64,000 nucleotides of DNA from Podarcis tiliguerta (lineage: Eukaryota). Position 1 is the first letter of the stretch. The number at the start of each line of letters is the position of its first letter. Location of the stretch: assembly GCA_965153285.1 (NCBI GenBank), contig OZ229111.1; one strand, 5' to 3'. Below the pieces are notes generated by a model. That model made no database searches. It saw only the letters and a program-made list of their open reading frames with translations, and was not told the DNA's origin. This document shows, piece by piece, positions 902-62,641 of the stretch. The position numbers and the translations under genes were made by a program.

Positions 902-11205
<10,304 letters not shown>

Positions 11206-17850: not shown

Positions 17851-18535
17851 GCTTTTATCCAGAAGAGTGATGGAGGAGCTCTTACAATCACAATCGTTAC
17901 AGGTGCAACCCCGTGCGCCCTCACTTGAGAATAAACCCCAGGGAATAAACCCGTATAGATGAATGGCACACTGCTCTGTATTGCAAGTGCCATGGAGCTC
18001 AAGGCAATCTTGGGATGACGCCACTCCTGTGGAAGCTTGCTCAGAAGTAAACCTGGAGGTGTCCTGTGCAGCTTCTGTCGTCTTCTCCATGATCTTCACA
18101 ATCCCTTGCTAAGCATAGCTTGGCGTTAGCCTTCTATAGTAGTAGATCAGCAAGGCAGACGTAGGCCTATCTAGCTGCTTGCCTAAGGCCAGCTGGCAAG
18201 CCTGCAACTGGGACAAGATTTGAATCCAGGAACTTCTTGGCTCACATCCTCGGCTACTACACCAGCTCTCAGGCTAGCTATACTAATTTTCTGAATGGCT
18301 ATAAAGATTGGCAGCAATGAATAGTAAGGAGGCCGCAGCAATGGGTATTTAGGCACTCTGTTTTAATTCATTTAGGCTCACTGCATTCCACCCGGGCACT
18401 CTTCGTGTTCCATGGAGGTGGGCACTTGGAAAAGCAAGAGACAGCATTTACATCTAATAACAGGAGAGCACGCTCCAGCAGCACGGGCCAGCCTCTCCGT
18501 CTATTGCATTCAAAGATGTTAAGGCAGTAGATGTG

Positions 18536-34600: not shown

Positions 34601-37600
34601 GTGCCAAGGTGGGGGGAGACTGCAAACTTTTGAATAAATATGGGCCAATAATAAGAAACTGGTGACATAATTCCATGACAACCTTTGCCTCTGGTGTAAA
34701 AACCCAGCATTGCTCTGTCTGACATATTAGCATTTTAGACACAGCATTATGCAACTACCACGCATTACATATTGCAACTTCCACAGCTAATTGGTAAAGC
34801 TCTGGAGATTTCCGGAGCAAACATCATGCACATACATGGGCAAATGAGGGAGAAAAAGATGGACAAACAGGACCAAAGACTTGGGACTCAGCTACATTGG
34901 CAAAGAAAAATCACTTTATATGTGTTGTTTATGCATTCTAACACTGTGACACCAGATGGCGCTGTGGAGTTCCGTTTTTGCTAACCTGATTTCTCATACA
35001 AAGTTTGCAACGCGTTTAACTGAAATGCTTCTTTGATGTGTCTAGATTCAGCCTTGGCGCACACTTCCCGCCAGCCCTCCACTACCCGTTACCTTCAGAT
35101 CGTACTTCCTGTGCACGGTGAGCCTGTGGCTGAACATGTTCCTCATGACCAGCATGTAGCTCTCCTCGTTGTCCACACTGAGCCGGTACATACCCAGGAA
35201 CTGAGGCAGCAGGGTGCTCCCATGACACTTCACAATGTACTGCAAGAAGGAAACAAGATGTTCAGGAAGTACCATTTGCTAAGTCTAGTGAGCCCAGAAC
35301 AAAGATCACCAAAAGCTTAGACAAGACTTATGCACAGTAGGAGGACGACTTCAGGAAGGCAAATCCAAAAATGGAATTGTATTCTTCTCTGTTGGAGTCC
35401 CAGTCCCCAAACCACAATTCTCCTGCATTTTGGCTTGTTGGGGCTTTCGTCGGTCAGGGTGCAACAGACTCAGCTAGCTATCCTTTGCCAATGAGGACTA
35501 TTCCTCAGCACTTGGCTTGCTATCCCGTTCTTTGGGTCCTACTCCCTCTTCATTAACCTCCATCCTCTCTTGATCACAAGACCACTGTCTTTTTTTGAGC
35601 ACCAAGTACTGTATTTTTCACTCTATGGGACACACTTTCCCCCCTCCCAAAATGAAGGGGAAATGTGTGTGCGTCCTATGGAGCGAATGCAGGCTTCAGG
35701 AAGCTATCCGCAAGCCTTGGGAGCTCGGCGGGAGTGCCCGCTGGGATAGCAGCCTGCATCCCGAAGCCTGGGGTGCACTGCAGCGCTTCTCCCCACCGCC
35801 AGCCCCACAAGCTCGGCGTTCACCTGAAGCCTCCAGAGCCCAGCGGAGCGTCGCCTTCCCGCTGTTCCCCGACCTGGTCTTTGGGGCTGGAGGTGGGAGA
35901 AAGCAGCACTCCCCCCCCCCCCGCCAGCCCCGGTCAAAGACCAGGTCAAAAGGAACCCAAAGCCTCCAGAGCCCAGCGGGAACTCCTGCTGGGCTCCGGA
36001 GGCTTCGGGTGAACGCACCTTGAACACACAGAACGCACCTTGACTTAGAGGGGGAGAACAAGAAATTCCCCCCCCCCCCCCCGTTCTCCCCCTCCTATGG
36101 TCCGGTGCGTCCAATAGAGCGAAAAATACAGTATATCCAGCCTAGATTTAAAAGGCACTCTAGATCTTCCATCACAGCGGCTCAAGGGGGACTAATACCC
36201 ACCCATCCACTCACACAGAGGCAGACAGTGAAAATCCAGTCAGTTTTCCTAGTGCATCATCTGTAATTAATCTCTGGCCTTGCTAATACAGACATTGCCA
36301 TGCTTTTCTTTACTTCTCCACTCTGCCTTATGAGTCCTGCGCATGCTGGTGAGCACTAGAGACATATATAAAAAGTCAGCAATATTTTGATTTTCTTTTT
36401 TTAAAGGAGAGCAGCCATTGTTTTCTTCACCCCGGAACACATCAACCTGCAATCTGTTTTGCATCATAACCTAACCTAAGGAAGCTGGTGTGAAGTTACA
36501 GGGAACCAGGCAGAGGGCCTTCTCGGTAGTGGTGCCATCCCTGTGGAACACCCTCCTATCAGATGTCAAGGAGATAAAGAACTACACAACTTTTAGAATA
36601 CATTTGAAGGCAGCACTGTATCGAGAAGTTTTAACGTTTGACATTTTATTATGTTTTTATATGTGCTAGAGGCTGCCCAGATGAGCTGGGAAAACAAAGC
36701 CAGATGGGCGGGGTATAAATAATAAAATTATTATTATTACAATTCATCCTAAAGCTATTATAAAGTACAAACTAGGGCTTTTCATCATGGCCAGCAATAT
36801 TCTTCACCACATTTTTTTATAAATGCTTAACATGTAATCTGAAAAAGAGTCGTGGTGGACTCAAAGGTTTACTCACTACTTTACGAATTTTACTTTGTTA
36901 TGTTAAAGGTACTGCAATAATGTTGCTGTTTGGATTTTTTCATCCTAGTGGACCAACATGGCTGTCTATATGGAATGCTTCCATACCAATACTGATGAAC
37001 AGGTCTCATTGTATTCCTTCCACCTATTATTAGTTGGCCCAAATGAAGAATTTGGCAGCCTGAGGATAGGGCCTATTTTGTGTTTTGAACTTCAGTACAG
37101 TGCCCACATCTGTGAGGTGCTTCACAAACAACACTGGTGTTGTTCTTAGCTAGCAGGGCACTCGGCATTCCTTAAATGTTAGCTTTCAGTATTTTTCCAT
37201 TTGAAAATTGCTCCTAAGGCTATGGAGAGAAGCTTGACAGCATGGCAGCAATGCCTGCTCAGATCTCAGAAGTAGGTGAGGAACGGAGAACAACCTCCAG
37301 TGGTCAGGGGGCAGGAGCCACGCAGAACCCTGAAGCCCTTTTCCCTGTCCGTGGCTAGCAGAAAGAACTGTGCAAACTTGCTTAGTTTTGCTCTTCAGTG
37401 CACTAAGATTTTATATTTACTGCTATTTAATATATTCTCGTGGAGGTTAGTTTGGAGGTTTGGATCCCAAGTTAATTTTAAAAAGTTCACAGGAAGACAG
37501 ACCATTTCCTGTCCCCGCCTCCCGTCGTGCAGCTACCTGCACACCAATAAGTCACTCTGGAGGATCAATGGGCCCCACTGAACAGATGTGGGGTGAGGCA

Positions 37601-40600
37601 CAGGTGGCCCTTTGCTTCCATGAGCATCCTTCAGGTGAACTTATTTTACGCTCCAAGTCAGAGTCCACATCACATGCCTGCAACCCCATACAAAGAAGCC
37701 CGCTTGCCTTCTCGTCTTACCTGGTGGTAGTGAGACAGAAGGCTATGCACGTCAGCCACATCTTCACTGGAGATCTCCTTGATCACCAACGTTCTGTCGT
37801 AGGACAGGAGGAAGCGCCCCCCACCCTCAATCTCATAAGTGGGCGGACTGCGTGTCAGCGAGACCTGAAGAAGTGAGAATGAACCAATGACAACAAGGCT
37901 CTGTACCGATGACCCTGGCATGGCTGATTTATCTTTTTGATAAGGGTGGGCAACAAGGGAGTTAAAGATAAACCTTCCCTAGCAATGGAGTAGCAAAAAG
38001 CTGAACAAAACTTCTGGGCTCCAGATCTTCCCTCACGTCCCCTTTGACAGCCACCCTCAAGGCAGCCGTTCCTTTAAAAAGGCTCTTAGGGAAATGAGGT
38101 GGTGCAGGAAATGTTGAATGATAGAATCATCAATTTGGAAGGGACCACAAGGACCATCTAGGGACACAGGTGGCGCTGTGGGTTAAACCACTGAGCCTAG
38201 GGCTTGCCCATCAGAAGGTCGGCGGTTCGAATCCCTGCGATGGGGTGAGCTCCCGTTGCTCGGTCCCTGCTCCTGCCAACCTAGCAGTTCAAAAGCACAT
38301 CAAAGTGCAAGGAGATAAATAGGTACTGCTCCGGCGGGAAGGTAAACGGCATTTCCGTGCACTGCTCTGTTTCGCCAGAAGCGGCTTAGTCATGCTGGCC
38401 ACATGACCTGGAAGTTGTACGCCGGCTCCCTCGGCCAATAAAGCAAGATGAGCACTGCAACCCCAGAGTCAGTCACGACTGGACCTAGTGGTCAGGGGCA
38501 CCTTTACCTTTTACTAGGACCATCTAGTCCAACCCCTTGCAATGCAGGAATCTTTCTGCCCAAGGTGGGGCTCAAACCCACAACTCTGATATTAAGAGTC
38601 TCATGTTCTACTAACTGAGCGATCAATAATTTTTATGAAGTCCAGGAAAGAAGCTCTGCTGCCTGCTTCAGTTTGCTTCAGTGCAAAGCCAGAGCGGTGC
38701 CCTCTGGATGTTTTTGGGCCACAAAACTGCCCATTGGGTCATGCTAGCTGGGGCTGATGGAAACTGTAGTCCACAACATCTGGAAGGCCCCATGTTTGTT
38801 ACCCTTGCTCACATGATGGAAACCAGACCAAGAACACATTAAAGAGGGTACACTCAAATGCTGCATCCCAGAAGTCTCACTCTGGCTCCCTTTAAAGAAA
38901 AGGAAACTTGGAGGGTTAAAATGCGCAGAGAGAAATGGCCAGTTCAAGGGGTCTGTGGGAGCTGCTGGGGGCTCTTTCCCCTTCTATTGTGATGTCTCAT
39001 ATGCTATCTTTCCTCTTCTCCCTCTTCCAATAGAGAGAATGCAAGTCACAAATAGTGATGTGAGGTGAGAATATTCTCGAGAATGCAAATATTCTTGAGA
39101 ATATTTTCTGCTAGAAAATTCTGTGGAGAATATTCTCCACAAACTGTAAATTCTAGTGTAGGAACCAGTTTTATAACCCACATTAAAGAAATCTAGTAAA
39201 TAATAAGTCAAGCTGTGATATTGCCAGTGTAAGTAATGAATAATGATTTTTTTTTCCTGGTCCAATTACATTACTAGGCATTGTGTCTTTCAATATGGGC
39301 AGTTCTGAAATGTGAGCTACAGAAAACATTTTAATATTTTTTTAAGTTTTAAAAATGCCATTCATTTAATTTGATGAATATTTGAATCTGTATGTATTTC
39401 AACTATATGTGATAGCCTTTTTTTCTAGTTTGGTGTGACCTTATTCTTAGAAACTGTATACCCTTGGCCATACAGTGTAATTTTAAAAAAAAAAAGGAAA
39501 GTAGCTTTAATGCTTTATACACTTAAAGTACCTAAGCCTATACAATTATGTGTAACAGCATGCGAGGTAGCCTTGATTTAAACAGTTGACGTTTCTATAT
39601 TTTTATTCAGTGCCAGTAATTGGTTTTGCAGTGCCATTTTTAAATATTCCTTTTACTTTAAAAGCTACATTTCATGCATACACAACATAATTTGAATTCA
39701 AATTGGATGGTAAATATACGTTTAGTGGCAGGCTCAGTGATTAACATGAGTCATTCACGTTGCATTTTCAATTTCAAGTTTGGTGCAAAAAATCAAAGAA
39801 TGTGAATTCACTGCATTGCCCCATTGAATAAAAGTATCTGTACAGTTTTTGGTTGCCATCTGAACAGGTTTACCAATGAACAAACATGTATATTAAGTAA
39901 TTATATCATTTTCAATGCATTAAAATGAATATTCTCCTATTTTAAATGAAAATTCTCTAATATTCTCATTAATCGAGAATATTCTCAAGAATGTTCTCCA
40001 AAAGATTATTCTCAAGAATTTAACATCACTAGCCACAAACATCCATTTGATGCAACTCGTGCAACCATCTTATATGCAGTAGGCCAGCCTCACTACCCTC
40101 ACAATGCAGACAGGAGCGGGGCTATCTAGAGAGCAGTTCATGGCAGAGGTAAGGTTCAGAGTGCGGACTTTGTAATTACTGTATTTTTCGCCCTATAGGA
40201 CGCACTTTTTCCCCTCCAAAAATGAAAGGGAAATGTGTGTGCATCCTATGGGGCGAATGCAGGCTTCAGGAAGCTCTATGCAACCCTCGGGAGACCAGCT
40301 CCGAGGGTTGCGCAGAGCTGCCTCCAGTCCCGGGCTCAGCGCAGCTCTGCGCGGCCATCGGGAGCAGGTCGCGAAGTCCCGCCCGGCTCCCAATGGCCGC
40401 GCAGAGCTGCCTCCAGTCCCGGGCTCAGCGCAGCTCTGCGCGGCCATCGGGAGCAGGTTGCGAAGTCCCGCCCGGCTCCCGATGGCCGCGCAGAGCTGCC
40501 TGCAGTCCCTGGCTCAGCGCAGCTCTGCGCGGCCATCGGGAGCCGGGCGCGAAGTCCCGCCCGGCTCCCGATGGCTGCGCAGAGCTGCCTCCAGTCCCGG

Positions 40601-43600
40601 GCTCAGCGCACTTCTCCCCATCGCCAGCCCCACAAGCTCGGGGGTCAGCGGGGAGGTGGAGCACGTCTTCCCGCTGTTCCTGTTCCTCTTCCAGCCCCGC
40701 ACCTGGAGGGGGAAATAAAATATTTTTTCTTTATTTCCCCCCCAAAAAACTAGGTGTGTCCTATGGGCCGGTGCGTCCTATGGTGCGCAAAATACGGTAA
40801 TAGCTCATTCTCTTAAGCCTTCCAACTCCCATTGGGTGTTCATACACAACTCAGTACCCAACTGGCTATTTGTAACAGGTGTCATAACTACTGCTGTGCC
40901 TGGGCAAGCAAATTCAGGAACAAAGGCAGTAATCTATGGCTGCAGTCAGAACACTGGCCTTATCCCACCTCAAACATCAATTTCTCTCATGGGAACATGC
41001 CTGCAACCAATGCCTCCAGTGAGCTTATTAGTAGCCTATGATTGCGCCTTATGCGGCAATCTTCCTGCAGTGTGTCCAGCTGAGCAATTTATAACCCTCC
41101 CAATTAGCTCCACACTGGAAGTCTACACTCTGATTTATTAGCTGAATTTCAAACTTGCTTTCGAACCAGCATTCTCAGTGTTCGAAAAACATGGATGATT
41201 TTAAATTTAAAACTAGCAGATACATACTGTACTAAAAAAACTATAAAACCTGGACAAAATCACAAAACTATAAAACCTGAATATATAATAAAATAACAGC
41301 AACTATAAAATCTGAATGAACCCAGTAAGAAAACACCTTCTCATTAGCTTTCTTCTAAAACAGCAGAAGCCTAACGGGGAAAGCATTAGCAATTTCTCCA
41401 GAAATTTAGAACAGGCGAAGTCCCGGCGGACTGGAGGAGGGCAAATGTTGTCCCTATTTTCAAAAAGGGGAAAAGAGAGGACCCAAATAATTACCGCCCA
41501 GTCAGTCTAACATCAATACCAGGGAAGATTCTGGAGCAGATCATTAAGCAAACAATCTGTGAGCACCTAGAAAGGAATGCTGTGATCACCAATAGTCAGC
41601 ATGGATTTCTGAAAAATAAGTCATGTCAGACTAACCTGATCTCATTTTTTGACAGAATTACAAGCCTGGTAGATGAAGGGAACGCAGTGGATGTAGTCTA
41701 CCTTGATTTCAGCAAGGCATTTGACAAGGTGCCCCATGATATTCTTGTAAAGAAGCTGGTAAAATGCGGTCTTGACTATGCTACCACTCAGTGGATTTGT
41801 AACTGGCTGACTGACCGGACCCAAAGGGTGCTCATCAATGGTTCCTCTTCATCCTGGAGAAGAGTGACTAGTGGGGTGCCACAGGGTTCTGTCTTGGGCC
41901 CGGTCTTATTCAACATCTTTATCAACGACTTGGATGATGGACTCAAGGGCATCCTGATCAAATTTGCAGATGACACCAAACTGGGAGGGGTGGCTAACAC
42001 CCCAGAAGACAGGATCACACTTCAAAACGACCTTGACAGATTAGAGAACTGGGCCAAAACAAACAAGATGAATTTTAACAGGGAGAAATGTAAAGTATTG
42101 CACTTGGGCAAAAAAAATGAGAGGCACAAATACAAGATGGGTGACACCTGGCTTGAGAGCAGTACATGTGAAAAGGATCTAGGAGTCTTGGTTGACCACA
42201 AACTTGACATGAGCCAACAGTGTGACGCGGCAGCTAAAAAAGCCAATGCAATTCTGGGCTGCATCAATAGGAGTATAGCATCTAGATCAAGGGAAGTAAT
42301 AGTGCCACTGTATTCTGCTCTGGTCAGACCTCACCTGGAGTACTGTGTCCAGTTCTGGGCACCACAGTTCAAGAAGGACACTGACAAACTGGAACGTGTC
42401 CAGAGGAGGGCAACCAAAATGGTCAAAGGCCTGGAAACGATGCCTTATGAGGAACGGCTAAGGGAGCTGGGCATGTTTAGCCTGGAGAAGAGGAGGTTAA
42501 GGGGTGATATGATAGCCATGTTCAAATATATAAAAGGATGTCACATAGAGGAGGGAGAAAGGTTGTTTTCTGCTGCTCCAGAGAAGCGGACACGGAGCAA
42601 TGGATCCAAACTACAAGAAAGAAGATTCCACCTAAACATTAGGAAGAACTTCCTGACAGTAAGAGCTGGTCGACAGTGGAATTTGCTGCCAAGGAGTGTG
42701 GTGGAGTCTCCTTCTTTGGAGGTCTTTAAGCAGAGGCTTGACAACCATATGTCAGGAGTGCTCTGATGGTGTTTCCTGCTTGGCAGGGGGTTGGACTCGA
42801 TGACCCTTGTGGTCTCTTCCAACTCTATGATTCTATGATTCTATGATTCTCCAAAAGCAGGCCTGGAGGGCATCTCTGGGAAAGGAGTTCCACAACAAGG
42901 CTGCCTTGGTCAAGAAGGCTTTCAGCCTCGTGCATTACACTCTGAAGTCCAGTATATGACAGCAGTAAGGGGGTCGGAGGCAGAGATACTGCCTGCACAC
43001 TGCAGCTGAGTACCTAAAGTTTTGGGCAGGCTTGTAAGAGTCTGAAGTGTAAGACGAGGCCCACATACCTGGTAATCCTGGTCATCAATGCTGAAACGTT
43101 CGCGAAGATTGCGGAAGACCTGCGGGCAGTATTCCTTGAATTTGAAATGGCTGGGCAGGTTTTCTCTGCAAGAGTCGAGTGACAGAGTTAGCTGCTACTC
43201 CAAAACTCGGACTGCACATGCAGCAGGGTGAGCTGGAGGAGGGAGCTGAACTGGGGTGGGGAGAATCACATTTCTGAATGCACTTCTATGAAAAAACAAA
43301 AACAGAAAAGCCTCCCCCCTTCTGCACAAAAATAAGAACCTAGCACATCAGTGCAGTGGCGTTGCGTGGGTTGTCAGCACCCGGGGCAAGGCAAGTAATT
43401 TGCGCCCCCTAACCCGGGGCAAGGCAAGTAATTTGCGCCCGCCCCCCCCCTGCTGCACTGTCCCTCCCCCAGATAGTCCCTCGCTCTCTCTCCGCACCGC
43501 ATCGCACGCCTGGCACCCCCCCCCTCCACAGTGGGCGGCGACCCGGCGGCTCGGATCGGATTCGCACAGCAGTGAGAGAGAGTGAGTGAGCCAGGTAGGG

Positions 43601-46600: not shown

Positions 46601-49600
46601 ATGTTGCTTTAGTCCAGGGGTCAAATAGTCACAAAATAGGTTGCCTCAAAGCATGGGAAAGGAAGACTGTAGGGTTGAAAAATGGATTTTCTTGTATTTG
46701 CATAATTTTTACCTGGGATTTACTCCAAGCCACCATCAAAAGAAATATCGTACCTATCTCCAGTGCTATTTTTCTAGAAAAATAGGTGCTGGAACTCACC
46801 ACAAACACCTCTCTTGTCCTCTTCAAATGGCAATGGCACCCACCTGAGGGGTGCCGGAACAGAGTTCTGGCTAAAAGAAAGCCCTGCCTACCTCCATGGA
46901 ATGACCTGTAAAAACTACCGTAATTTTTGCTCTATAAGACTCACTTTTTCCCTCCTAAATAGTAAGGGGAAATGTGTGTGCGTCTTATGGAGCGAATGCA
47001 GGCTGCGCAGCTATCCCAGAAGCCAGAACAGCAAGAGGGATTGCTGCTTTCACTGCGCAGCGATCCCTCTTGCTGTTCTGGCTTCTGAGATTCAGAATAT
47101 ATTTTTTCTTGTTTTCCTCCTCCAAAAACTAGGTGCGTCTTGTGGTCTGGTGCGTCTTATAGAGCGAAAAATACAGTACATATTCAGCACCTGTCAATGC
47201 CATCATGGCACAAAACATGGACCCTTGGAACAAATCCACGTACTATAGTGGCTGCAGTAAGTGCTGGATAGCTTGGGGAAGGGTGGGTTACAATGCAAGC
47301 CACAGAAACCAATGGCAGGTTCAATTTGATGGTTGTTTGGAGGAGATGCCTTTAAAAAGTCATAAGGATCCATGGTTTTTTGCCATTACTGACCCCACCC
47401 TGCTGCCCTGAGGTCGCCCTTTGCCCATACAGTTGCTTCTCTTTTATACATCTGTCTTTCTGTACCTCACAAGCCCATCCACCACAGCTCACAGTTTCCT
47501 TTGTTCTAGATAGCATTTAGAAGCGGTGTTCAATCAGAAGGGTAGAGGGCGTGTTTTAAACTTTATGCCCACATTCATCACCCCAAGTACCAGCATCTCT
47601 CAGGATGTCTCCCCCCACCTTGTGCTCCTCCAGTGAGTTTTCCTTAGGGGCACCTAGCTTGCCACTGCAGGAGACACAATCCCAGGCTAGGAAGACCTTT
47701 TGGCAAGGCAGTTCTTAGGGATCTGTCACTAACTCAGGAGCTATGGTCAAACTGGACTGTCAATTCTTGTCCATGGACTTATCCCAGGATAAAAACTCTG
47801 TGATAACAGTCTGGAGTTAATCACCTCTGAAACTTGATTATGAGAATGAGTCCAAAAGAGAAGGATTAAACTGATTGTTGTGTAGGCTTCCACATTTAGG
47901 AGAGTGAATCTCCCACAGGGAGTTTCTTTTAAGCACCCTCCAGTTCACAAGCCAGGAAAAACACGGAAAATGTACCAGCAGCCTGGGCTGCTACAAAAGA
48001 TCAGGAAGTGATCTGTATTGATATGATCATGGAGAGATGAGTGAAGGTGACTCATCGGCATACATATCTGGGCCTGGCCTCTGTGTGAGAGACTGTTTGC
48101 TGGCAAGGGAGATGGCAATGCTGAGGGGCCAGCCTGAATTTCAGTTGCCACAGCCCTTTCTTCTGCAGCGGAAGCTGCAGTGCTGAGGTAACTTTAAAAC
48201 CAGTCCTAAGCTGAAGTGATATGTATGAGTTGACCGGTTGCAGGCATCCAGCATGTCTTGTTTATGGGGGGACCGGACTGTGATGCCTGCTTTGTTGGGG
48301 ATTGTGTATTATGGAATGAAGGGTTCAAGTCTGCAACACATATAAATTACACAAATTAAGCAAATTTGCTCAATATCGTTTTGTAAATTTAAACTGCAAA
48401 AAATGGTTAAAAAAAGAAAGAAAAAACAAAATGTTCTGTCTTTGCCGGGGGGAGGGGGAGAAAAAAAGTCTACTGGAGGACATGGAAGCTCTGCTGGCGT
48501 CTGTTATTTCCACAGGCATCACCTACACATTTTCAAGAATGTAATTGCAACCATAGGGTCTAGAAACTTGTCTTTACAAACATTAAAGGTTAGATATTCA
48601 GGAAGTTGAATCCCACCGGATTCTGCATGTTCTCTGTGCTGCCCCAGAATCACAGCATACACACTGCATAGGCCAAGTCAGTGGGTACAGAATACACATG
48701 GATGACTGAGTAGAGAGAACAAAATAGTAGGTATCGTATACTGACTAATGCTGAATATGGTGTGACGACCCTGCATACATAGGACCAAAGAGGGGGCACC
48801 TGTGGTCCTCCAGTGTTGCTGTTGGGCTTCAACTCCCAACACCCTCAGGCACCATGGGCAATGGTCAGGGGTCATGGGAGTTCGTCCCATCTGGAAGTCC
48901 AGATTCCTGATCCTTGCAGTACACTATTCCTCATGACTTTATTCCACTTTCACTTCACTTTCCCTCCAAAGAGTACATAGCTGTTTACATACAGTTCCCA
49001 TGCAGTCTCCCGTCAAAATACCTAAAAGGGCCTGACCTACTTGGCTTCAAAACCGCAGAACTGTGTCATGTGCCTTTGGACTAGACTCAAATTGAGAGCA
49101 CTCCAGTTATTGTCAGCCACCAAGAGAACCAATGGAGTTTGTAGCTTTTCCTTACTTCAGGTTTCTGGGAAAGATCAAAGCTATTTATCGGGCCTACAGG
49201 AATGAACCAATCTGGGATAGATCCTTTGTGGCAAAAAAACTGCAAGACCCAATATGCTTCAGAGAAAACAGTAACTGCAGCAAAATGATCAGGCAAATTA
49301 TTTGCACAGGGTTGTGACTGCAAGCTCATTCAGCTGGAAGTCTTCTGACATGGGGCAGTCTGACCTATCAAATACATAAACAGTGCATTGATTTGAACAT
49401 CATAATAAACCAGTGTTAAAATATACTATGGTTTGTATCTAACTAAATCACTGTATGTGCAGCCCTTCCTTTCCCCATGCACTGCCCCCAATCTGTTACA
49501 CAAGGTTTTTTTTGGGGGGGGGGGGAATCTGGAGCAGATGGGGGGGTGTATGCAGGGGGAGAGTTCTATTGGGGTTTGGGCTGGGTGTTCACCAGTATGT

Positions 49601-53800: not shown

Positions 53801-55781
53801 GTCTGAAGGGACTCAGGGGCTCAAACACCCTGCAAGAATCAAATGAAAAAGCAAGCAAGTGAAGGGGATGAGTATTTGGAGGATGAAAAGTGACATTTTG
53901 AGAAGTAATCCGTCTACTTCTTTGTTCATTCATTTCTGTTCGCTGGTGAAAATCCTTTAATGCAAAATTCCAAGATTATGATCTCAAATGGAGGGAAATA
54001 TTTTTTGATGTCAGGTTCACCCAGAGAGTTCCTTGAGAGCCGGTCCGCAAATACATGACTGAAAGAGTAATATTTTGCACGTTCAGTGAGAGGTAAGCTC
54101 CACTGTGTTCAGTGGGGCTTACTGCTCGGTTAAGTGTGTTTAGGACTACAACCTGGGTATTCATTTATTTATGGTATATATATCTGTATACTGCTTTTCA
54201 CCTGAAGATCACAGGCTGGTTCACAAAATGAAGACACAAAACACATAATCAAACCAAAACAAACGAAGGTACCTGTTTGATCTCAAGAAAGTCCCACAGC
54301 AGCTACCTGACTGCTTTCCAAAACTCCAACTGCTAGTCCCAGGCAGAAGGAAATTATCACCGAGCAACAGATGAATACAGGAAAGTTTCAGATCTGGTTA
54401 CCAGAAGCCTGCTACCTGCAACTACACTCTTCCAACTGAAGAAATGTTCTCTTTTTCTACTGCAAGGCTAAAGTGGTCAGAACACCTGTCTCTCCTCCAC
54501 ATTTTGAAGAAGCACATGGGCTATTCACAGGCATGTAAGAAGGGTGAGCCTTGAAGTAAATAAGGAAAATCTCCCTGAAACTATGGCAAATAGGATACCT
54601 GTGCGATGTATGGTTGAGAGTCTTTCTTAGCCACCCTCCTATCAGGTGGGCAGTCCTCACCCACCAGATTTGGAAGCAAGGGACAAGACAGAAAAGGGGA
54701 AAGAGATGAATGTGTTGATTCACCCCTTCAGTGTCAACACAATGATTGCTTCAGCCTAGCCATCAAGAGCACTGTCCCCAGAGAACATGGAGAAATAAGT
54801 TTAATATCAATATTTGACTAATGTACTTATTGATGCTGTTTATTTGCCTTTGGAATGCTTCATTTTCAAGCAAATACTACACTTCCCTAACACGCATTTA
54901 AAACAGCTCACAATAGCCGAGGAAGTGCCTACATTAACGTAAAGCCAATATAAACTGTAACAAAGCAGAAATTATTGCTAGCCAGTGTATTCACACAGTG
55001 AAGAATTCTTAGCACCAGGTATTGGGGAAGATTAACTGAAAAGAGAAGAGGGCAGCTACTATAAGCTATTACATCTTGAAGAATGGTGATGGTGAAGTGA
55101 TAAAAAGAAAGAGGTAATGAGTGGTGGTGGGAAGGAATGTGTTGGATACCAAAGTTGCCAAATACCTCTGGATCAGGATAATGCTTTATGTGCATGTGAT
55201 GAAGGGGATTCTGGCCCGTGAAAGCATGTGCCATAATAACGTCTTATGGTCTGTAAGGAGTTTGGGGGTTGTTGTTTTGCTACAGAGAGATTAGGCATGC
55301 AAATAATCATAATTTGTATACTGTCCTTCATCCAAAGATCACAATAGAAAAATGCAAATTATTGCAATTCAGGACAGTTTTGTGAATGGATCCTAAACAA
55401 GAATCTTCCTTCCTTCTCCCACCTACCAGGAGTAGATCTCGCCCCGCCCCAACTCAGTAGCTGCCCGCCGCATCCCACATACATGGGTCAAGGGTAGAAT
55501 TGGAAGGGATTCCGACGATCATCCAGCCCAACCCCTTGCAATTGCAGGACCCTTTCACCCAACGTGGGGCTCGAACTCACGACCCTGAATTACGAGTCCC
55601 ACGCTCTACCCCCTGAGCCATCCCACTCTGGGGTCTGACCGGGAGGCGTTACCTGGTGGTTGATCCCCCAGCCCAGCACGCCCAGCAGAGGGTCGGCTGA
55701 GCGCAGCACCTTCACACGCTGCGGCACGAAGTGCTTCTTCTTGGTCTTCGTGCGGGTCCCCGGCCCCACCGAGGCTGCCAT
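20892..55781 (-). CDS. PIP4K2C: Phosphatidylinositol 5-phosphate 4-kinase type-2 gamma, spliced CDS of 10 exons, 402 aa
   Basis: join(complement 55781-55653, 45753-45656, 43165-43069, 37864-37721, 35239-35093, 29232-29194, 28185-28072, 23885-23630, 21634-21531, 20972-20892) = 1209 nt, all GT-AG and in phase. Motifs [32 protein letters not shown]; gamma-like [20 protein letters not shown]. Confidence 0.96.
21531..21634 (-). CDS. PIP4K2C: PIP4K2C exon 9
   Basis: [34 protein letters not shown] (activation loop). Confidence 0.96.
22825..23178 (-). mobile_element. Sauria SINE
   Basis: Reverse complement of the same family with (aaaggt)n tail. Confidence 0.9.
23630..23885 (-). CDS. PIP4K2C: PIP4K2C exon 8
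   Basis: [18 protein letters not shown]...acidic insert...[10 protein letters not shown]. Confidence 0.96.
25744..26093 (+). mobile_element. L2-clade LINE 3' end
   Basis: Same family as 50190-50510; [15 protein letters not shown]...FRRHLK; (att)n tail. Confidence 0.85.
27047..27383 (-). mobile_element. Sauria SINE inserted in an older repeat
   Basis: Family sequence on the minus strand; degenerate TSD ctgaaagctgtta / ctgagagctatta. Confidence 0.88.
28072..28185 (-). CDS. PIP4K2C: PIP4K2C exon 7
   Basis: [38 protein letters not shown]. Confidence 0.94.
29194..29232 (-). CDS. PIP4K2C: PIP4K2C exon 6 (39 nt)
   Basis: [13 protein letters not shown]; ttttttcccag acceptor, gtaatt donor. Confidence 0.94.
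30843..31290 (+). mobile_element. Older L2-clade fragment
   Basis: [18 protein letters not shown]-like coding remnant followed by an L2-style tail. Confidence 0.7.
31587..31653. repeat. (AC)n(AG)n compound microsatellite
   Basis: Directly visible. Confidence 0.95.
35093..35239 (-). CDS. PIP4K2C: PIP4K2C exon 5
   Basis: [49 protein letters not shown]. Confidence 0.96.
35609..36131 (+). mobile_element. Same MITE family, copy 2
   Basis: Same TIRs and left arm; TA TSD. Confidence 0.85.
36494..36739 (+). mobile_element. L2-clade LINE 3' end
   Basis: Same tail family as 25744 and 50190. Confidence 0.8.
37721..37864 (-). CDS. PIP4K2C: PIP4K2C exon 4
   Basis: [48 protein letters not shown]. Confidence 0.95.
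38120..38620 (-). mobile_element. tRNA-Lys-derived SINE with CR1-like tail (split by the Sauria SINE)
   Basis: Reverse complement gctcagttagtagaacatgagactcttaat...tttgagccccaccttgggc resembles tRNA-Lys(CTT), followed by a CR1 3' end. Confidence 0.75.
38161..38515 (+). mobile_element. Sauria SINE nested in a tRNA-Lys/CR1 SINE
   Basis: TSD aggaccatcta (38150-38160 / 38516-38526). Confidence 0.9.
39053..40031. mobile_element. AT-rich non-autonomous hAT element (979 bp)
   Basis: TIR tagtgatgt / acatcacta; TSD gtcacaaa / gccacaaa; subterminal arrays of the GAGAATATTCTC palindrome. Confidence 0.8.
40179..40797 (+). mobile_element. Same MITE family, copy 3, with internal 89-bp tandem repeat
   Basis: Same TIRs, TA TSD; gcagagctgc recurs at 40312, 40401, 40490 and 40579. 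Confidence 0.88.
41408..42850 (+). mobile_element. Young 5'-truncated CR1 LINE with uninterrupted ORF2 RT region
   Basis: Open frame from [21 protein letters not shown] through ORF 41582..42766 ([23 protein letters not shown]); (attctatg)n tail; possible TSD ttctcca. Confidence 0.95.
43069..43165 (-). CDS. PIP4K2C: PIP4K2C exon 3
   Basis: [32 protein letters not shown]. Confidence 0.95.
43354..43677. mobile_element. GC-rich hAT MITE
   Basis: TIR cagtggcg / cgccactg; perfect 8-bp TSD catcagtg; internal duplication acccggggcaaggcaagtaatttgcgccc. Confidence 0.85.
44394..44703 (+). mobile_element. Same MITE family, copy 4
   Basis: Same TIRs, TA TSD; internally shorter relative of copy 1. Confidence 0.85.
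45656..45753 (-). CDS. PIP4K2C: PIP4K2C exon 2
   Basis: [33 protein letters not shown]; AG/GT bounded. Confidence 0.95.
45962..46100. mobile_element. Short palindromic MITE (older relatives near 9990-10290, 38690-38800, 48780-48910, 53640-53775)
   Basis: ttcctcaaactcggccctccag...actacaattcccatc / gatcatgggagttgtag...ctggagggccgaggttgaggaa fold-back structure. Confidence 0.75.
46918..47176 (+). mobile_element. Same MITE family, copy 5, with internal hairpin
   Basis: Same TIR pattern, TA TSD; 31-bp inverted repeat 47017-47047 / 47057-47087. Confidence 0.82.
49590..50512 (+). mobile_element. L2-clade LINE 3' fragment
   Basis: [39 protein letters not shown]; tail gccgcccagagtggctggggaaacccagccagatgggcggggtataaat plus (att)n. 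Confidence 0.88.
50515..50747. mobile_element. Tigger/mariner-like MITE inserted in an L2 (att)n tail
   Basis: TIR cagttgtaccttgg / ccaaggtacgactg; TA TSD. Confidence 0.85.
50750..50803. repeat. (ATT)n microsatellite, L2 tail-derived
   Basis: Directly visible. Confidence 0.9.
55495..55624 (-). mobile_element. tRNA-Lys-derived SINE with CR1-like tail, start of PIP4K2C intron 1
   Basis: Reverse complement gctcagggggtagagcgtgggactcgtaattcagggtcgtgagttcgagccccacgttggg plus CR1 tail. Confidence 0.75.
55653..55781 (-). CDS. PIP4K2C: PIP4K2C exon 1
   Basis: [43 protein letters not shown]|gtaacg, in a CpG island. Confidence 0.93.
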
Positions 55782-55995
55782 CCCCGGGCGCCGCCGCCGC
55801 CGCTGCCAGCCTCGCCCGCTCAGCCGCCCTGCCCGCCGCTCGCTCAGCCTCGCCGCCGGCAACGGAAGCGGCGATCAGCTGATGCCGCCGTCACGTGACC
55901 CGAGGGAGGGAGGGAAGGAAGTCGGCTGGGACAGAGAGGAAAAGCGCGAAGTGACGCACAGAGGGAGGGAGAATGACCTGCACTTCCGGTAGCAG
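55780..55995. promoter_or_regulatory. PIP4K2C CpG-island promoter with CLEAR/E-box, ETS and CRE-like motifs
   Basis: GTCACGTGAC 55890-55899; CGGAAG 55863-55868; GTGACGCA 55951-55958; ACTTCCGG 55982-55989. Confidence 0.75.
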
Positions 55996-56062
55996 ATGAA
56001 TCATAGGTAGAATGAGAGAGTTCATTACAGATGCAAGAATCTCAACTAGACCATACAGGGCA

Positions 56063-56459
56063 TAGAATCATAGAATCATAGAGTTGGAAGAGACCACAAG
56101 GGCCATCGAGTCCAACCCCCTGCCAAGCAGGAAACACCATCAGAGCACTCCTGACATATGGTTGTCAAGCCTCTGCTTAAAGACCTCCAAAGAAGGAGAC
56201 TCCACCACACTCCTTGGCAGCAAATTCCACTGTCGAACAGCTCTTACTGTCAGGAAGTTCTTCCTAATGTTTAGGTGGAATCTTCTTTCTTGTAGTTTGG
56301 ATCCATTGCTCCGTGTCCGCTTCTCTGGAGCAGCAGAAAACAACCTTTCTCCCTCCTCTATGTGACATCCTTTTATATATTTGAACATGGCTATCATATC
56401 ACCCCTTAACCTCCTCTTCTCCAGGCTAAACATGCCCAGCTCCCTTAGCCGTTCCTCTA
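56063..56459 (-). mobile_element. Young CR1 3' fragment nested in an older CR1
   Basis: Near-identical to 42450-42845; flanked by agggca; older diverged CR1 continues 56460-56715. Confidence 0.9.
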
Positions 56460-57799
56460 AGGGCAGGGCAGATGGCCATCCAGCCTCTGCTGAAAAACCT
56501 CCAAGGGAGGAGAGCCCACCACCTTCCGAGGAATCTGATCTGCTGCCGAGCAGCTCGTAGTGACAAAAGGTTTTCCCTGATATTTAGTCGGCATTTCCTT
56601 TCTTGTAACTTGAAGCCGTGGGTTCGAGTCCTGCCCTTCGGAGCAGGAGAAAACAAGCACGCTCCACCCTCCACGTGGCAGCCCTTTAGACATTGGAAGA
56701 TGGCTATCATATACTTTTCCTCAGACCTTGTGGGGGGCCGGACTGTATTTTGGAAGGGGGGGGGGAGAACGAATTCCTCTGCCCCACAAATAACCCAGAG
56801 ATGCATTTTAAATAAAAGGAGACATTCTACTCATGTAAAAACACAGATTCCTGGACTGTCCACGGGGTGGATTGAGAAGGCGATTGGGCCAGATCCGGCC
56901 CCTGGGCCTTAGTTTGCCTACCCATCATATATCTACTCGCAGGCCCATGAGCTGCACCTCGCTTCCCGTGCAAGGCCGGACCAGCGCCCACCTGCCCAGC
57001 CTTCGCACCCATTCCTGAAGGGGAGCCTGGCGTGGAGCCAGGGCAGGTGGGCCGTTGTCTCCGCTGAGGGAGACGGCTGCACGCTCCGTAAGCGCTGGGC
57101 GGGAGCCTACTTCCGAGTCCACGCATTACAGTCCTGCCCTCCCTGTCTCAGATTAGCTGGTTTAATGTAGGTTTTGGATGGCTGGTATTGTTTCATTACG
57201 CTTTCCACACAACGACCCTGTGAGGTAGGCTGGGGGCAGGTCCCTCCACTCTCTATTTTCTAAGCCAGCATTGCTTCCAGGAAGTTGCTGTTGGGGAAGG
57301 AAAGGAACTAACAAGATTTAAGACAACATCCAGAGTGACAGAACGGAAAATCCCCCCTCCCCAGCCAAAATGTATTGGGTCGGCCCTGTTCCAAAGTGTT
57401 ACTGATTGTGATTGTGAAGGCAAAGTATTGCAACTACGGCTCGTAGCCATTGTTCTCCGTTGTCTGATCCTCCTTTAAAGCCATCCAAGTGGTTAATATA
57501 CTGTGGTGTCCAGACCGGACTAGGACCCAGGTGTCCAGGGTTCAAGCCCCCTCTTGGCTATCAAGCTCCCTGAGTGACCTTGGACCAGGTTATGAGCTCT
57601 CAGCCTAGCCTACCTCACAGGATTACTGTGAGGATAATTTGGAGAGAGGGATTGCATCTTGTGCACCACTTTGAGTTCCGTGGAGAAGATGTAGAGTTTT
57701 CACTTAATAATACAATAAAGCACCAAGAAAGGCCTCTAGCTGCACAAACATATTTTAAAAAGATACCTAGAGGTGGCAAATGTGGGTGAGCACATAGGC

Positions 57800-58126
57800 C
57801 ATGGGTAGGCAAACTAAGGCCCAGGGGCCGGATCCGGCCCAATCGCCTTCTAAATCCAGCCTGCAGACGGTCCAGGAATCAGCATGTTTTTACATGAGTA
57901 GAATGTGTCCTTTTATTTAAAATGCATATCTGGGTTATTTGTAGGGCCTGCCTGGTGTTTTTACGTGAGTAGAATATGTGCTTTTATTTAAAATGCAACT
58001 CTGGGTTATTTGTGGGGCATAGGAATTCGTTCATTCCCCCCCCCCCCAAAAAAAAATAGTCCGGCCCCTCACAAGGTCTGAGGGACAGTGGACCAGCCCC
58101 CTCCTGAAAAAGTTTGCTGACCCCTG
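57800..58126 (+). mobile_element. hAT MITE (same family as 9082) with internal duplication; partial inverted copy at about 56719-56926
   Basis: TSD acataggc / acctaggc; duplicated tgtttttac.tgagtagaat...gggttatttgt block. Confidence 0.85.
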
Positions 58127-59146
58127 ACCTAGGCAGACAGAGAAGGTGGCTTCATAATACAATAAAGCCCCCCCCCCCATTTTTTTAAAGACGATTCAGC
58201 CCACTGGAACCTATAATACACCGTGACCTAATGATGAACGACTAGCCAGCCAACACCTGGGCAAACAGGTGAGTTTTAAGGAGGGGCCAGAAACTGGACC
58301 CCAGCCATGGCCTGCCTTATTTTCTTGATTATCCAGAGGGATGCAAAGCTGGGAGAATTGGGGAAAACTCTTAAGGGGAGCCTAGATCCAGCTTCCTGAG
58401 CCTTCTGCTTGGGGGTAAATGCAGGGGTGGGCCACACGCTTGGCAGCTGCCTGAAGTTGCCCAGTGGTGCCATGGGCCTGGCAGGGAAAGCGTTCCTGGA
58501 TCCCAGAGCCCATTGGCTCCAGTCCTTCTTCAGGCTCTGACCTCACAACCAGCTGTGGAATCCTGCAGAATGTTTGGTTTCCTAGGAGGCCAGGTGAGTT
58601 GTTTAAAAGGATCCCTGGGTCAGTTGAAAGCCAGTTGAATCAGTCAGCCGCCCATAAAGCAGCCATTCTTCTTTTGTTGTCTTGAAAGCTGTTTGACTGA
58701 CTTTCTGGGCCTTTTTGGTTCTGAAGATCTTTTGCATAATGTGCATAATGGTGGCATAGAGGTAAAGTCATGGGAAAGGAGGGAGGCATCCTGAAGATTC
58801 GTGCCCCCGCCACATGCCTAGTTTTTAAAGATGCTCCTTGGTTATTTGACCTTTCTAACCCCCATGCTGTGTGTTACATGAGCCAGCAATTTCCCCAAGG
58901 AGTTTTCAGATGAATTTTCTGAGTTTTCATTATTGTCACCATCCAAATTGCAACAGAACTGCAACAGTTGGAGTCCAGTAGCAACATCTGGAGGGAACCA
59001 GGTTTGGGGAGGCTTGATGTAGAAGACATCAGGGTAATTTAGCATCGTAACACTGGGTGACTGGGCAGAGGTTTATTTTGGCCCTGAACAAGGGCTGGAG
59101 ACCTATAGCACAGACTTGAGACCCCTGCTTCTCCCTTCCTCCACAG

Positions 59147-62100
59147 AAGAGCCAGAGTCTCCGACCTGAGAGCCAAGGCAGACCCCTCCCTCCCCTCGCA
59201 GCTGGAAGAAGAATTCTGCGATGAAAGGCTATGGAGAGAGACAGGAGATTGCCGCTTCTCTTCCGGCACGGGAGGCCCTCCGCCAAGAAGCCATCCATGG
59301 TGAGGAGGGTCTTTCTGTGGCTCTTTCCTCAGGTCTCCCTCAGAAATATTGGGCAAGGGAGTCCAGGGGGATCTTCACTTTCTTAAAGCATAGGGAGGGA
59401 GGGAGTGCCTGGGCGATCTGCTGGGAAATGGGTCCTTCTCCCTCCCAAGGGGAGCCTGCAACCTTTGAGTTCTCAAAAATGGCCAGGAGATAATTTTTCT
59501 CCAAACAAGACCCAGAATGGCAGTGGTGACCTTGGAGCTTTCAAATTCCAGTGCCACCCTGTGCAACTCCTCCCCTCCCCCAGCCAACTGCCGCCTCTTG
59601 CGCTCTGTTCTACAGCATTGTTTTGGCACCCCTTGCAGTGCGGCGCCCAGCGTGGCCACACCGGTCATGCCGCCCTAAAGTCACCAGAGCTACTGGTTGC
59701 TTCCTGGTGTCCAGGCTGGCAAATGGCCATAGCTCAGTGTGCAGCACTTGCCTTGCCTGCATGAGCCCCAAGTGCAGTAGCATCTCCAGGATGGCCTGGG
59801 AAGGAAAGACTCCCTTCCTGAGGTGCTGGAGAGTCACCTGCTGGACAGTGTGGAGGTCACTTTGGGCCAAGGAGGACCCCACCAATGGCCACTCTTTTGG
59901 CTCTGCTCCCAGTTCAGGAGGAGAGCAGGATCCATCTCTCCTTGTCAGGCAGAGCCCAAGTCTTTTTGGAAAGAACAACCCGCTTTAGCTGCCTCTTTTC
60001 CAGACCCTGCTGGGATTCAGCCTCTACCTAACCTTCTTCCCCTTCTGCCCTCTTTGCACAGAGCTGTTTATGACAGAGGCCTCCCATCTGCACTCACTGC
60101 ACATTCATATTGCTCCCCTTAAGGCCCTTTCCACCTGGCCCAGGGGGCTGGGCCCACACTCACCAGCCCCACTGAAGAGGCTCCTCATGAGGCCAGAGGA
60201 ACATCGCCTGGCTATTGTTTTATTGATTGATTTACTTAATATGCTGTAAACCGCTTTGAGTTTTTCAGTAAAAATATAAAGCGGTATAGAAATTTAAAAA
60301 TAAAGAAATTCTGGTGGTCCTGTTTTACCAGTGGATGTATCAGGATAAACTCCAATCACAGGAGGAGCTGTCCCCAATCTACGAGAACTCCTTAAGATCC
60401 ATAGTAAGTCTGCTTCCCCTCCAGACTGGTCCCCATTCTGTGGCTGGCCCAGGCCTCTGCTTCTTCCTGGGTGGGTCAGGAGCAGAGGGAGAAGGGACAA
60501 AAATAGAAGCACAGCACCCAGAGAGCTCTGCCGCAAGATCAGGCCCAAGGGGCCCAGTTAGACCTGCAGCCTGTTTTCAGGGGGGCCCACAAGCAGCAGG
60601 GCAGGAGTGCAAGCACAGTGCCCCCCCCCAGGAATGGGGATTGTTCAGAGGCATCCTTGGGCAGGGGAGGATGGAGGTGGCAGCCAGTTGCTGCCTCTAA
60701 GCCTAACCTACCTCACAGGGTTGTGAGGATTAAATGAGAAGGGAATCCATGGACACCCTCTTAAGCTCCTTGGAGGATAAGGTGGGGTGTAAATGACATA
60801 AATAAATGAGATTCCTGGTCTCTCCAGCACTGAGAAAGTGGTATTAAAAAAAGAGCAGGCCGTCTCCATCCCCCTCCTGTCCCTGCTGGGGTTGTTCTTT
60901 ATTCCCCCACTCCCATTGCCTTGCTCAACCTCCCCTCCCGTGTTTCTTCCCTCTCCTCCTAGGTTCTTTGTTGGGGAAAATGAAGGATCTGCAGGAGAAA
61001 GGGCCTCTCATTCACAGGTAAGGATCCCAGAGCAGGGCGGAGAGGCTGGTGGCAACTGGGAGGGGGTTGCTTGTGGGTCTCCAGTGGACTTTGGCCCTTG
61101 ATTTCCTGATGCTCACCAGGCGTGTTTCCGCTCCCCTGCCCCCCTCCTGCCTTCCTTCCCGCCAGTTTGGTGTGGCTGCAAGTGAGGAGCTCCGGCAGGC
61201 CACCCTGAAGTGCAGCTTGCAGCAGGCCAGGGCCCTGGAGATCCTTAAAATGAAGTAGCAGAGGGATGCTCGGTTCTGGCGTGTCATCCAGGTAAGCTGT
61301 GTGAGAAGAGGAGGCTGAGCTCACGGTAGGGGCCTTCTCAGCTGCTAGCTGGCCACTGTCCGGGGGGGGGGGCTCTTTTCCCATGCGAGGGGAGGGGCAG
61401 GAGGCCTGTCCTCTTCTCCCTGCTGCCCACTCCCTGGGCAAATGCAAACGTGCAGGAGAACTAGCCAGATGGTGTAGGTTAGGGGGTAACCCCAATCTCC
61501 AGGTGGTGCGAGATTGCAGGGGTTCTGGGGGCTTTCCCTGGGTTTGGTGTCCTTGGAATGAGGGGCAGCCTTCTGTTCTGACAGCAGCAACCCACCTGCC
61601 CCAACAGAGAATTCCCTAAGCAGGCAGGAGCTGAGCAGCAAGGCTCACCCCACTGGTTTTGCTGCTTGTGACCCTGGAGGTGGCTGACTTTCTCTGGTGT
61701 CCAGAAACATGTTGTCTGCTTTCTTCTTTCCCTTTCCCTGGAAATTGAGAGCAGCCCTGAATGCCACGACCACCAACTGACCGATTTCCTGGATTGTGAG
61801 ATGCAGTGCCGGGCCAGTTACCCTCTGCTGCTGAATAAGATCATCCAGCGCACCAATGGTATAGCTCTCTTTCTCCATGTCTTTGTGTGGTGGGGAGGGT
61901 GTCCCAGGAGAGCTGCATCTCTCCATGATTCCATGTTGATATGCTTTCTATTTTTGGGAGATTGTGAGCTGCATTGAGCCTGCCTTACTAGGGTAAGCCA
62001 GCACTTAAGAGGGTGATGGGGGGGGAGACGATGCTCTGTGTTTATACAACCCCCATCTGCTTGCATTAGTGCCCCCTGAGGCTGTAGGGCATAGGTGTTG

Positions 62101-62641
62101 TTCAGCAGCCCACTTTGTTCCTACCAGCAAACAAGGATCTGTTTGCCTTATGCATCTGGGCTGCTGCTGCTCATCTGCCTTCCAGACCTGTTTGCTTTTA
62201 AATGCAGCCTTGCTCCTAGTTTGTGCTGGGAGTTGCTTTAAATAAAACCAACTTTGCAGGCAGCCTCTGTGCCCCACTCTCTCTCTTTGCACCTTCCTCG
62301 CTCAGAGTCAACCTATGAGCACCAGTATCTCTGCCTGGCCCGCAATGAGGTCAAGGAGATCCTGGAAGACATTCAGGATTGGCAGGCAGAGAACCACTGG
62401 CAGCTGCAAGTCTACCAACAGACTTGCCTGGACGACCGATCTCTGTGCAAGAGCAGCCAGCCACTGGCCAGGTAGTTCCAGGTAGAGCCTCCCCTTCACC
62501 CTCCCCTCCGATCCCTGGCCTTGTCCCGCTCTTCCCCTCTGTGAATTGCTGCCTTTTTTCTGCCCCTGCTGTGCAAAACCTTGACCTTATGGAGCACCAG
62601 CTAATCCAGGAGGGGCGTCTGCAGCAAAAAGAAGACTGTGG
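59147..62641 (+). pseudogene. Non-processed pseudogene of an RGS-RhoGEF (ARHGEF11/PDZ-RhoGEF-like), DH domain and start of PH domain
   Basis: Exon remnants 59147-59299, 60062-60106+60312-60403, 60963-61017, 61166-61291, 61741-61858, 62306-62481, 62577-62641 translate to REALRQEAIH|ELFMTEASHLHSLHIL-VVLFYQWMYQDKLQSQEEL/PNLRELLKIH|SSLLGKMKDLQEKGPLIH|FGVAASEELRQATLKCSLQQARALEILKMK*QRDARFWRVIQ|EIESSPECHDHQLTDFLDCEMQCRASYPLLLNKIIQRTN|ESTYEHQYLCLARNEVKEILE...SSQPLAR*FQ|NLDLMEHQLIQEGRL/SKKKTV. This is colinear with the ARHGEF11 DH-PH sequence as recalled, with multiple stops, frameshifts and broken acceptors. Confidence 0.88.
60107..60311 (+). mobile_element. Short retroposon (L2-type 3' tail) inserted into a pseudo-exon
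   Basis: Interrupts the codons ATT C|TG; ends in tgtaaaccgctttgag...aaagcggtatagaaat...aataaa; attc repeated on both sides. Confidence 0.7.

Follow-up and report, generated by a model that had tools for sequence, protein, structure and literature searches.

Homology of the locus to ARHGEF11

The window analysed here is a 64,000-nucleotide stretch of contig OZ229111.1 from the lizard Podarcis tiliguerta (assembly GCA_965153285.1). Between positions 59147 and 62641, its plus strand carries a series of exon-like blocks, referred to as E1 to E8, which match the Dbl-homology (DH) and early PH residues of human ARHGEF11 (PDZ-RhoGEF) in a colinear manner. The blocks lie upstream of the first coding exon of a type-2 phosphatidylinositol 5-phosphate (PI5P) 4-kinase gene, which is on the opposite strand. 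We consider it highly probable that the element is a non-functional, non-processed, intron-bearing pseudogene, and that it is one copy, designated copy A, of a shortened ARHGEF11-derived family that our searches found only in lacertid lizards.

Each block was searched singly. In phmmer searches against PDB sequences, E6 (query 61741-61860) gives an ungapped alignment with residues 146-185 of 1xcg, with E-values of 9e-5 for ARHGEF11, 1e-3 for ARHGEF1, and 1e-2 for ARHGEF12. E7 (query 62302-62472) aligns to residues 186-240 of the same structure with an E-value of 4.6e-4, and ARHGEF11 is its sole match among guanine nucleotide exchange factors (GEFs). On ARHGEF11, E7 thus continues directly after E6 with one small gap. 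The identity of E6 and E7 to human ARHGEF11 is only about 50%, and the Pfam RhoGEF profile (PF00621) detects E6 alone with an E-value of 3e-4 and 21.4 bits, which is below the gathering cut-off of 27.6 bits because the block is only 40 residues long. Two neighbouring blocks that fall, colinearly and on the same strand, on neighbouring segments of a single protein are not a chance match. The kin products used for the same locus pass the PF00621 cut-off, with 34.6 bits for P0001 and 40.4 bits for P0005.

The other blocks are weaker. When searched singly, E1, E2, E3, E4, E5, and E8 matched no Pfam family, and E3 and E5 had no PDB match by phmmer. E1, E4, E5, and E8 are colinear with ARHGEF11-like proteins of other lizards, and these proteins in turn match ARHGEF11 with E-values from 1e-23 to 1e-132. 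ARHGEF11 is the best-scoring solved relative of the window pieces as well as of each kin protein; except for E7, ARHGEF1 and ARHGEF12 come next, and other GEFs score lower. The original prediction, which had described exon-like blocks colinear with ARHGEF11, is borne out in this respect: all of the peptides it quoted are present in the plus-frame translations, and the matches of E6 and E7 are consecutive. Its description of the locus as a decayed, intron-containing DH/PH remnant likewise agrees with the homology, the spacers, and the lesions described below.

A processed (retrocopied) pseudogene was considered and ruled out. The blocks are 448-761 bp apart, and most of them have pyrimidine tracts and GT donors.

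Exon map and lesions

The features of the locus are listed in Table 1. Inspection of the exon borders shows that the seven-exon map drawn earlier needs correction. Its plus-strand blocks are real, but exons 2 and 3 are a single 147-nucleotide exon split by a 205-bp insertion. Further, E7 reaches 62481 and contains a second stop, the remnant of a first exon has to be added, and the acceptors of E6 and E8 are mutated.

Table 1. Positions of the exon remnants and inserted sequence at the ARHGEF11-like locus.
Feature	Position	Strand	Description
First-exon remnant	58739..58761	+	Probably what is left of the family's short initial coding exon (relatives' copies A and B: MCRWW..)
E1	59147..59300	+	Pre-DH linker up to ..AREALRQEAIH
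E2	60062..60105	+	5' part of first-DH-helix exon (ELFMTEASHLHSLHI); residues 70-84 of PDB 3t06
Insertion	60106..60310	+	205 bp with A-rich tail and no GT..AG ends; splits the E2/E3 exon
E3	60311..60403	+	3' part of first-DH-helix exon (LVVLFYQWMYQDKLQSQEEL, then PNLRELLKIH)
E4	60963..61017	+	SLLGKMKDLQEKGPLIH; 15/16 residues shared with copy A in both P. lilfordi and P. muralis
Degenerate remnant DFLMLTR	61100..61120	+	Conserved ..D/H-L/F-L/M-L-S-Q codons
E5, main part	61166..61292	+	FGVAASEEL..KMK*QRDARFWRVIQ
E6	61741..61858	+	EIESSPECH..YPLLLNKIIQRTN
E7	62306..62481	+	ESTYEHQYLCLAR..PLAR*FQ
E8	62577..62641	+	Start of PH domain (NLDLMEHQLIQEG..)

The first-exon remnant reads ATG TGC ATA ATG GTG GCA TAG, followed by GTAAAG. 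The residues WWHR are found in another frame, with one base extra after codon 2 and one base short before the donor. Two predicted products of relatives, P0006 (copy A of P. muralis) and P0008 (copy B of P. lilfordi), start with MCRWW-H/R-R-R. The match is short, and the segment is probably the remnant of the family's first exon. In E1, an 8-nucleotide deletion around 59244 shifts the frame and cuts the T-V-G codons, which are conserved in the relatives and in human ARHGEF11. A tblastn search with P0006 accordingly recovers E1 as two pieces (59145-59243 and 59242-59301) in different frames with 90-91% identity.

The exon encoding the first DH helix is split by the insertion. E2 and E3 together have 137 nucleotides compared with the 147 expected from residues 70-118 of 3t06, and a 10-nucleotide deletion near 60370 shifts the frame of E3. 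The A-rich tail of the inserted 205 bp may be of the short interspersed element type, which would make the insertion a putative mobile element; blastn found no second copy of it in the window outside 60650-60800.

The junction between E4 and E5 (61013-61165) cannot be reconciled with the P. muralis product and is best described as rearranged. An in-frame TAA (61019-61021) lies just past E4. Forty-five extra bases (61118-61162), beginning with the last codon of the DFLMLTR remnant, are absent from every kin protein, and tblastn alignments of P0006, P0008, P0009, and P0014 each need two long gaps around 61100-61162. In E5, which agrees with P. muralis copy A at 25 of 29 residues, a TAG stands at 61256-61258; copy B reads Q-Q-R-D at this place with no stop.

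The last three exons are damaged as well. The acceptor of E6 is lost by mutation to TG, the intron ending in CTG (61738-61740). The Lacerta agilis copy B has a Q there, and its predicted product P0005 reads ..CLSQ-EIESS through the end of the intron preceding E6. Compared with its relatives, E7 has two codons fewer and one more, and a TAG (62473-62475) replaces a codon for E. The acceptor of E8 is mutated to AA, giving CAA at 62574-62576, and the loss of 11 nucleotides near 62625 puts the sequence out of frame ahead of the GTAAGT donor. In L. agilis, copy B still has all 12 codons from EG to the donor, and its read-through matches the other frame of the window, KKTVGKWKK. Only the first 13 residues of the PH domain remain, and no PH exon was found beyond E8 before the end of the window.

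In total, the copy carries two stops within exons and a third past E4, four frameshifts, the 205-bp insertion, the 45 extra bases, and two lost acceptors, while most GT donors are retained. A complete open DH domain with CR1, the first helices required for exchange, is not present: the exon for CR1 is interrupted by the 205 bp and has lost 10 nucleotides, stops occur at 61256 and 62473, and E1, E3, and E8 are frameshifted. The window copy cannot make a RhoGEF and is at most transcribed as a non-coding RNA. We infer from these lesions that it has no function.

Related copies in lacertid lizards

A HMMER search with E7 against 1.84 billion representative proteins returned four matches only, all of them short and all from Podarcis, and nothing outside Podarcis at E-values up to 1e-3. 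Three further protein searches based on a word index, with P0001, an alignment, and P0007 as queries, added only Lacerta and Podarcis proteins, giving 14 related proteins in all. With their limited length window and word filter, the word-index searches returned no fragment of the true lizard ARHGEF11.

In P. lilfordi, products annotated as ARHGEF11-like are located on four chromosomes (contigs of 123.2, 53.0, 85.0, and 41.3 Mb), which correspond to four copies referred to as A, B, C, and D. Copy A comprises the orthologues of the window locus, namely P0001 of P. lilfordi (CAI5765101; 123 Mb) and P0006 of P. muralis (XP_077781425/LOC144327089; 126.8 Mb). Copy B, on contigs of 53.0 and 52.5 Mb, comprises P0008 and P0002 of P. 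lilfordi and P0005 of L. agilis (XP_033023496 in L. agilis). Copy C, at 85.0 and 92.0 Mb, comprises P0007, P0013, and P0014 of P. lilfordi (CAI5782053-55), P0003 of P. muralis, and P0004. Copy D, at 41-43 Mb, comprises P0009 and P0011 of P. muralis (XP_028565021 and XP_077776686), P0010 of P. raffonei (XP_053224084), and P0012 of P. lilfordi (CAI5798124). We found no paper mentioning these loci, which exist only as automatic annotations. By the share of 31-letter words, roughly 3-5% of bases differ between the window and four related organisms, which places its source close to these Podarcis species.

Identity to the window pieces falls from 89% for copy A through 66-79% for copy B and 56-57% for copy C to 49-50% for copy D. 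An unrooted tree, in which each window exon was entered as a separate row, supports A with B at 100/98, C at 97/94, and D at 100/100. All kin proteins score far higher on ARHGEF11 than on its two paralogues. Copy D has 444 bits on ARHGEF11 versus 280 on ARHGEF12 and 241 on ARHGEF1; the corresponding values are 167 versus 113 and 121 for copy C, and 93 versus 57 and 58 for copy B. The L. agilis product P0005, which is modelled through introns, gives alignments to the window that span the E7-E8 intron, extend beyond E8, and reach the end of the intron preceding E6. The similarity therefore extends to the introns of copies A and B, so the two are DNA-level duplicates that are far younger than the vertebrate genome duplications. 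The locus thus has paralogues, shares intron sequence with one of them, and carries lesions, as a duplicated (non-processed) pseudogene does, and its other copies are known from related genomes.

These results bear on the age of the locus. The original prediction had preferred an extra RGS-RhoGEF paralogue that died in this lineage. Such a gene would be a fourth ohnologue of ARHGEF1, ARHGEF11, and ARHGEF12, with a place next to PIP4K2C that dates back to early vertebrates. In human, ARHGEF11, ARHGEF12, and ARHGEF1 are members of the 1/11/12/19 paralogy group, to which 12q13 also belongs, and a fourth copy there would fit. The retained exon-intron structure and the identity of only about 50% between E6/E7 and human ARHGEF11 are in line with such an origin as well. 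Against it, the same type of sequence occurs on four chromosomes of one lizard genome, and the introns of A and B can still be aligned. The gap of 444 versus 280 bits between ARHGEF11 and ARHGEF12 for copy D is, in our judgement rather than by measurement, too wide for siblings dating from the two rounds of vertebrate genome duplication. Across 175 eukaryotic genomes surveyed for Dbl-like RhoGEFs, 71-72 members were counted per bony vertebrate, and the matching passages of that survey mention no fourth member of the subfamily (PMC5499878). An ancient paralogue at this position is thus very improbable, and the fallback offered with it, a translocated duplicate, is borne out. Nor did the proposal that the gene died here and is intact in other reptiles or amphibians hold up, as the intact sibling, copy D, is found in Podarcis itself on another chromosome, and is a shortened DH-PH protein instead of a full RGS-RhoGEF.

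Domain architecture and constraint

The Pfam domains of the related proteins are RhoGEF and PH_16, the PH type of ARHGEF11, only; PDZ and RGS domains are absent from all 14 of them, which further argues against an ancient RGS-RhoGEF paralogue. Copies A and B share the short new first exon (MCRWW), which stands directly before the pre-DH linker, and copy D starts with MGGCLSS. In all three, the start is followed by a pre-DH linker matching residues 5-71 of 3t06, and the gene models join E1 straight to E4, skipping the first-DH-helix exon (residues 72-116 of 3t06). Upstream of the window copy, five of the stop-free plus-strand stretches of at least 45 residues between the kinase first exon and E1 were searched, and they contain no PDZ, RGS, or other Pfam family. 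Judged by upstream domains (rgRGS, and PDZ for ARHGEF11 and ARHGEF12), the family does not belong to the RGS-RhoGEFs; judged by DH-PH similarity and the PH_16-type PH domain, with ARHGEF11 as top match, it does. The earlier labels "RGS-RhoGEF" and "G12/13-coupled" are therefore not warranted, as neither the 3.3 kb upstream, in the stretches searched, nor the 14 proteins supply these domains, and a new first exon precedes the linker.

Copy D differs from its siblings in being intact. Its proteins have 370-372 residues and are 97-98% identical among three Podarcis species. The PH_16 domain is complete (E = 3e-41), and the match to the RhoGEF profile covers positions 57-178 of 180 only; the segment corresponding to E2 is missing from the protein. 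Between P. lilfordi and P. muralis, 9 of 372 residues differ in copy D, 12 of 60 in copy C, and 6 of 31 in copy A (Fisher p = 4e-8 for D versus A plus C), such that A and C are 80-81% conserved. By this protein-level proxy, copy D behaves like a gene subject to purifying selection, and A and C as free-running sequence.

The architecture of copy D allows some conditional reading. Lacking the first helices, its DH domain is probably unable to catalyse exchange, and the MGGCLSS start fits, in our own reading, a pattern for myristoylation and palmitoylation. When only the PH domain of PDZ-RhoGEF was recruited to the membrane, RhoA activity fell in some cells, which was attributed to binding of RhoA-GTP (PMC12113259). 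By analogy, a membrane-bound copy D with a dead DH and an intact PH domain could bind active RhoA without activating it, and thereby damp RhoA signalling. In the ESM Atlas, copy D retrieved only small DH-PH clusters of a generic kind. It is conceivable, albeit doubtful, that the family is a lizard-specific one in which copy D is a real gene, with an acylation-like N-terminus ahead of a truncated DH and an entire PH domain, and in which A, B, and C are failed siblings. The odd architecture of copy D may merit a test at the bench.

Decay of the window copy

Part of the damage is common to other Podarcis. The P. muralis copy A product ends at the same ..LKMK as the stop in the window. The P. lilfordi copy A model lacks the same two codons of E7, and its E6 begins within the exon, at SSPECH, avoiding the same acceptor. 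As these three lesions recur in other Podarcis, decay appears to predate the split of the species. Neither the E1 deletion nor the first-exon indels occur in the P. muralis product; they are private to this genome, and decay therefore continued after the split.

The same lesions bear on whether the copy is broken at all. If the gene were intact in the animal, they would have to be assembly or sequencing errors, a reading for which we found no supporting evidence. Independent runs from the same species contain 53-71% of the sampled words, which speaks neither for nor against such errors. More than ten separate lesions of different kinds would need this explanation, and some of them are common to P. 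muralis (the ..LKMK end) and P. lilfordi (the avoided acceptor and the two-codon loss); we regard it as extremely improbable.

Another reading is that the locus is still used from a start of its own, about 2.9 kb from the PIP4K2C first exon, giving a non-coding RNA or a short peptide with the broken exons skipped. NCBI models a spliced P. muralis product of 118 residues at LOC144327089, consisting of exon 1, E1, E4, and E5, and a 197-residue model exists at the orthologous place in P. lilfordi; the GT donors, most of which are kept, point the same way. Gene models alone are no proof of a stable RNA, however, and the short frame is broken in this genome by the exon 1 indels, the 8-nucleotide deletion in E1, and the TAA after E4. 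No run on record as RNA contains the stretch, and the species' proteins are about as alike as those of copy C and give no hint of constraint. Continued use is therefore unlikely.

The reading that we prefer, a decayed copy of a shortened ARHGEF11-derived family, would have the following history. A partial DNA duplication of ARHGEF11 would have taken the pre-DH linker, DH, and PH regions without PDZ and RGS, and would have acquired a new and short first exon. This shortened unit would then have been copied to further chromosomes, where one copy (D) stayed open and conserved. The copy landing between PIP4K2C and its upstream neighbour would have decayed, starting before the split from P. muralis and P. 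lilfordi and going on afterwards. Both the single founder and the order of these events are inferred.

Several points weigh against this reading. The lesions were read from the assembly sequence. The parent, the duplication breakpoints, and the dates were derived from proteins alone, and the tree was built with no outgroup. Gene models of the kin come from automatic annotation, and two of them read through introns or out of frame. The protein searches are restricted to proteins of 0.55-1.75 times the length of the query, and in a library of representatives the other cluster members stay hidden; the searches may therefore have overlooked a longer relative or one from other squamates.

Compared with human ARHGEF11 (1xcg, 3kz1, and 3t06), the window copy belongs to the same DH and PH sequence family and is colinear with it, but it is without the PDZ, RGS, and C-terminal parts, its frame is destroyed, and, unlike the ARHGEF11 locus, it lies beside PIP4K2C. 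With the other lacertid loci it has the truncated architecture and the exon set in common, and with copy B also the similarity of first exon and introns. It is the most decayed of the copies that can be read, unlike copy D, which is open, conserved, and complete in PH_16. Partial DNA-level duplicates of signalling genes are known in human as SRGAP2B/C and as ARHGEF5 with ARHGEF35 and ARHGEF34P, where some shortened copies are expressed and others are dead. Unlike the copies in these families, the lizard copies are dispersed over chromosomes and not clustered, and an action on the parent protein has no support here. The locus at 59147-62641 offers no evidence for a lost fourth G12/13-coupled RhoGEF in vertebrates; it is a clear-cut case of a partly duplicated gene whose copies have spread over several chromosomes in one lizard family and are mostly dead.

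Neighbouring genes and repeats

The first coding exon of the type-2 PI5P 4-kinase gene (55653-55781, minus strand) matches the alpha kinase with an E-value of 3e-11 and the N-terminally shorter gamma constructs with 7e-6, and is located inside a CpG island at about 55500-56250. The exon alone cannot separate alpha, beta, and gamma; we take the gene to be PIP4K2C from its further neighbour. This is a minus-strand open reading frame (5088-6032) whose product combines a RING finger with the beginning of a Deltex C-terminal domain, and it probably represents the final large exon of DTX3. A DTX3 neighbour fits PIP4K2C, as in human 12q13, where DTX3 is downstream of PIP4K2C. The head-to-head arrangement with PIP4K2C predicted earlier thus agrees with the minus-strand kinase exon upstream of the pseudogene and the DTX3-like gene further on.

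The 3.3 kb between the kinase first exon and E1 consist of repeats. Between the kinase promoter and the pseudogene, two inverted repeat copies (56713-56938 and 57788-58089) are 83-95% complementary and about 0.9-1.3 kb apart, and a 63-nucleotide unit is tandemly duplicated at 57885-58018. The strongest CpG island of the window (16500-18000; GC up to 0.75, CpG observed/expected about 1.0) lies between the DTX3-like exon and the kinase gene and may be the DTX3 promoter. An open reverse transcriptase frame of 394 residues (41582-42766, plus strand; Pfam RVT_1, E = 2e-27) is a fairly young long interspersed element copy that apparently lies within a kinase gene intron. A GC-rich interspersed repeat is present in four copies, at 2014-2508, 35595-36114, 40222-40800, and 46814-47248; the open frames of these copies share a common motif, and some copies are open on both strands. 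A GAG/GAA-type simple repeat at about 11100-11250 accounts for an EGEGEG..RERERE run inside the open reading frame 10821-11426.

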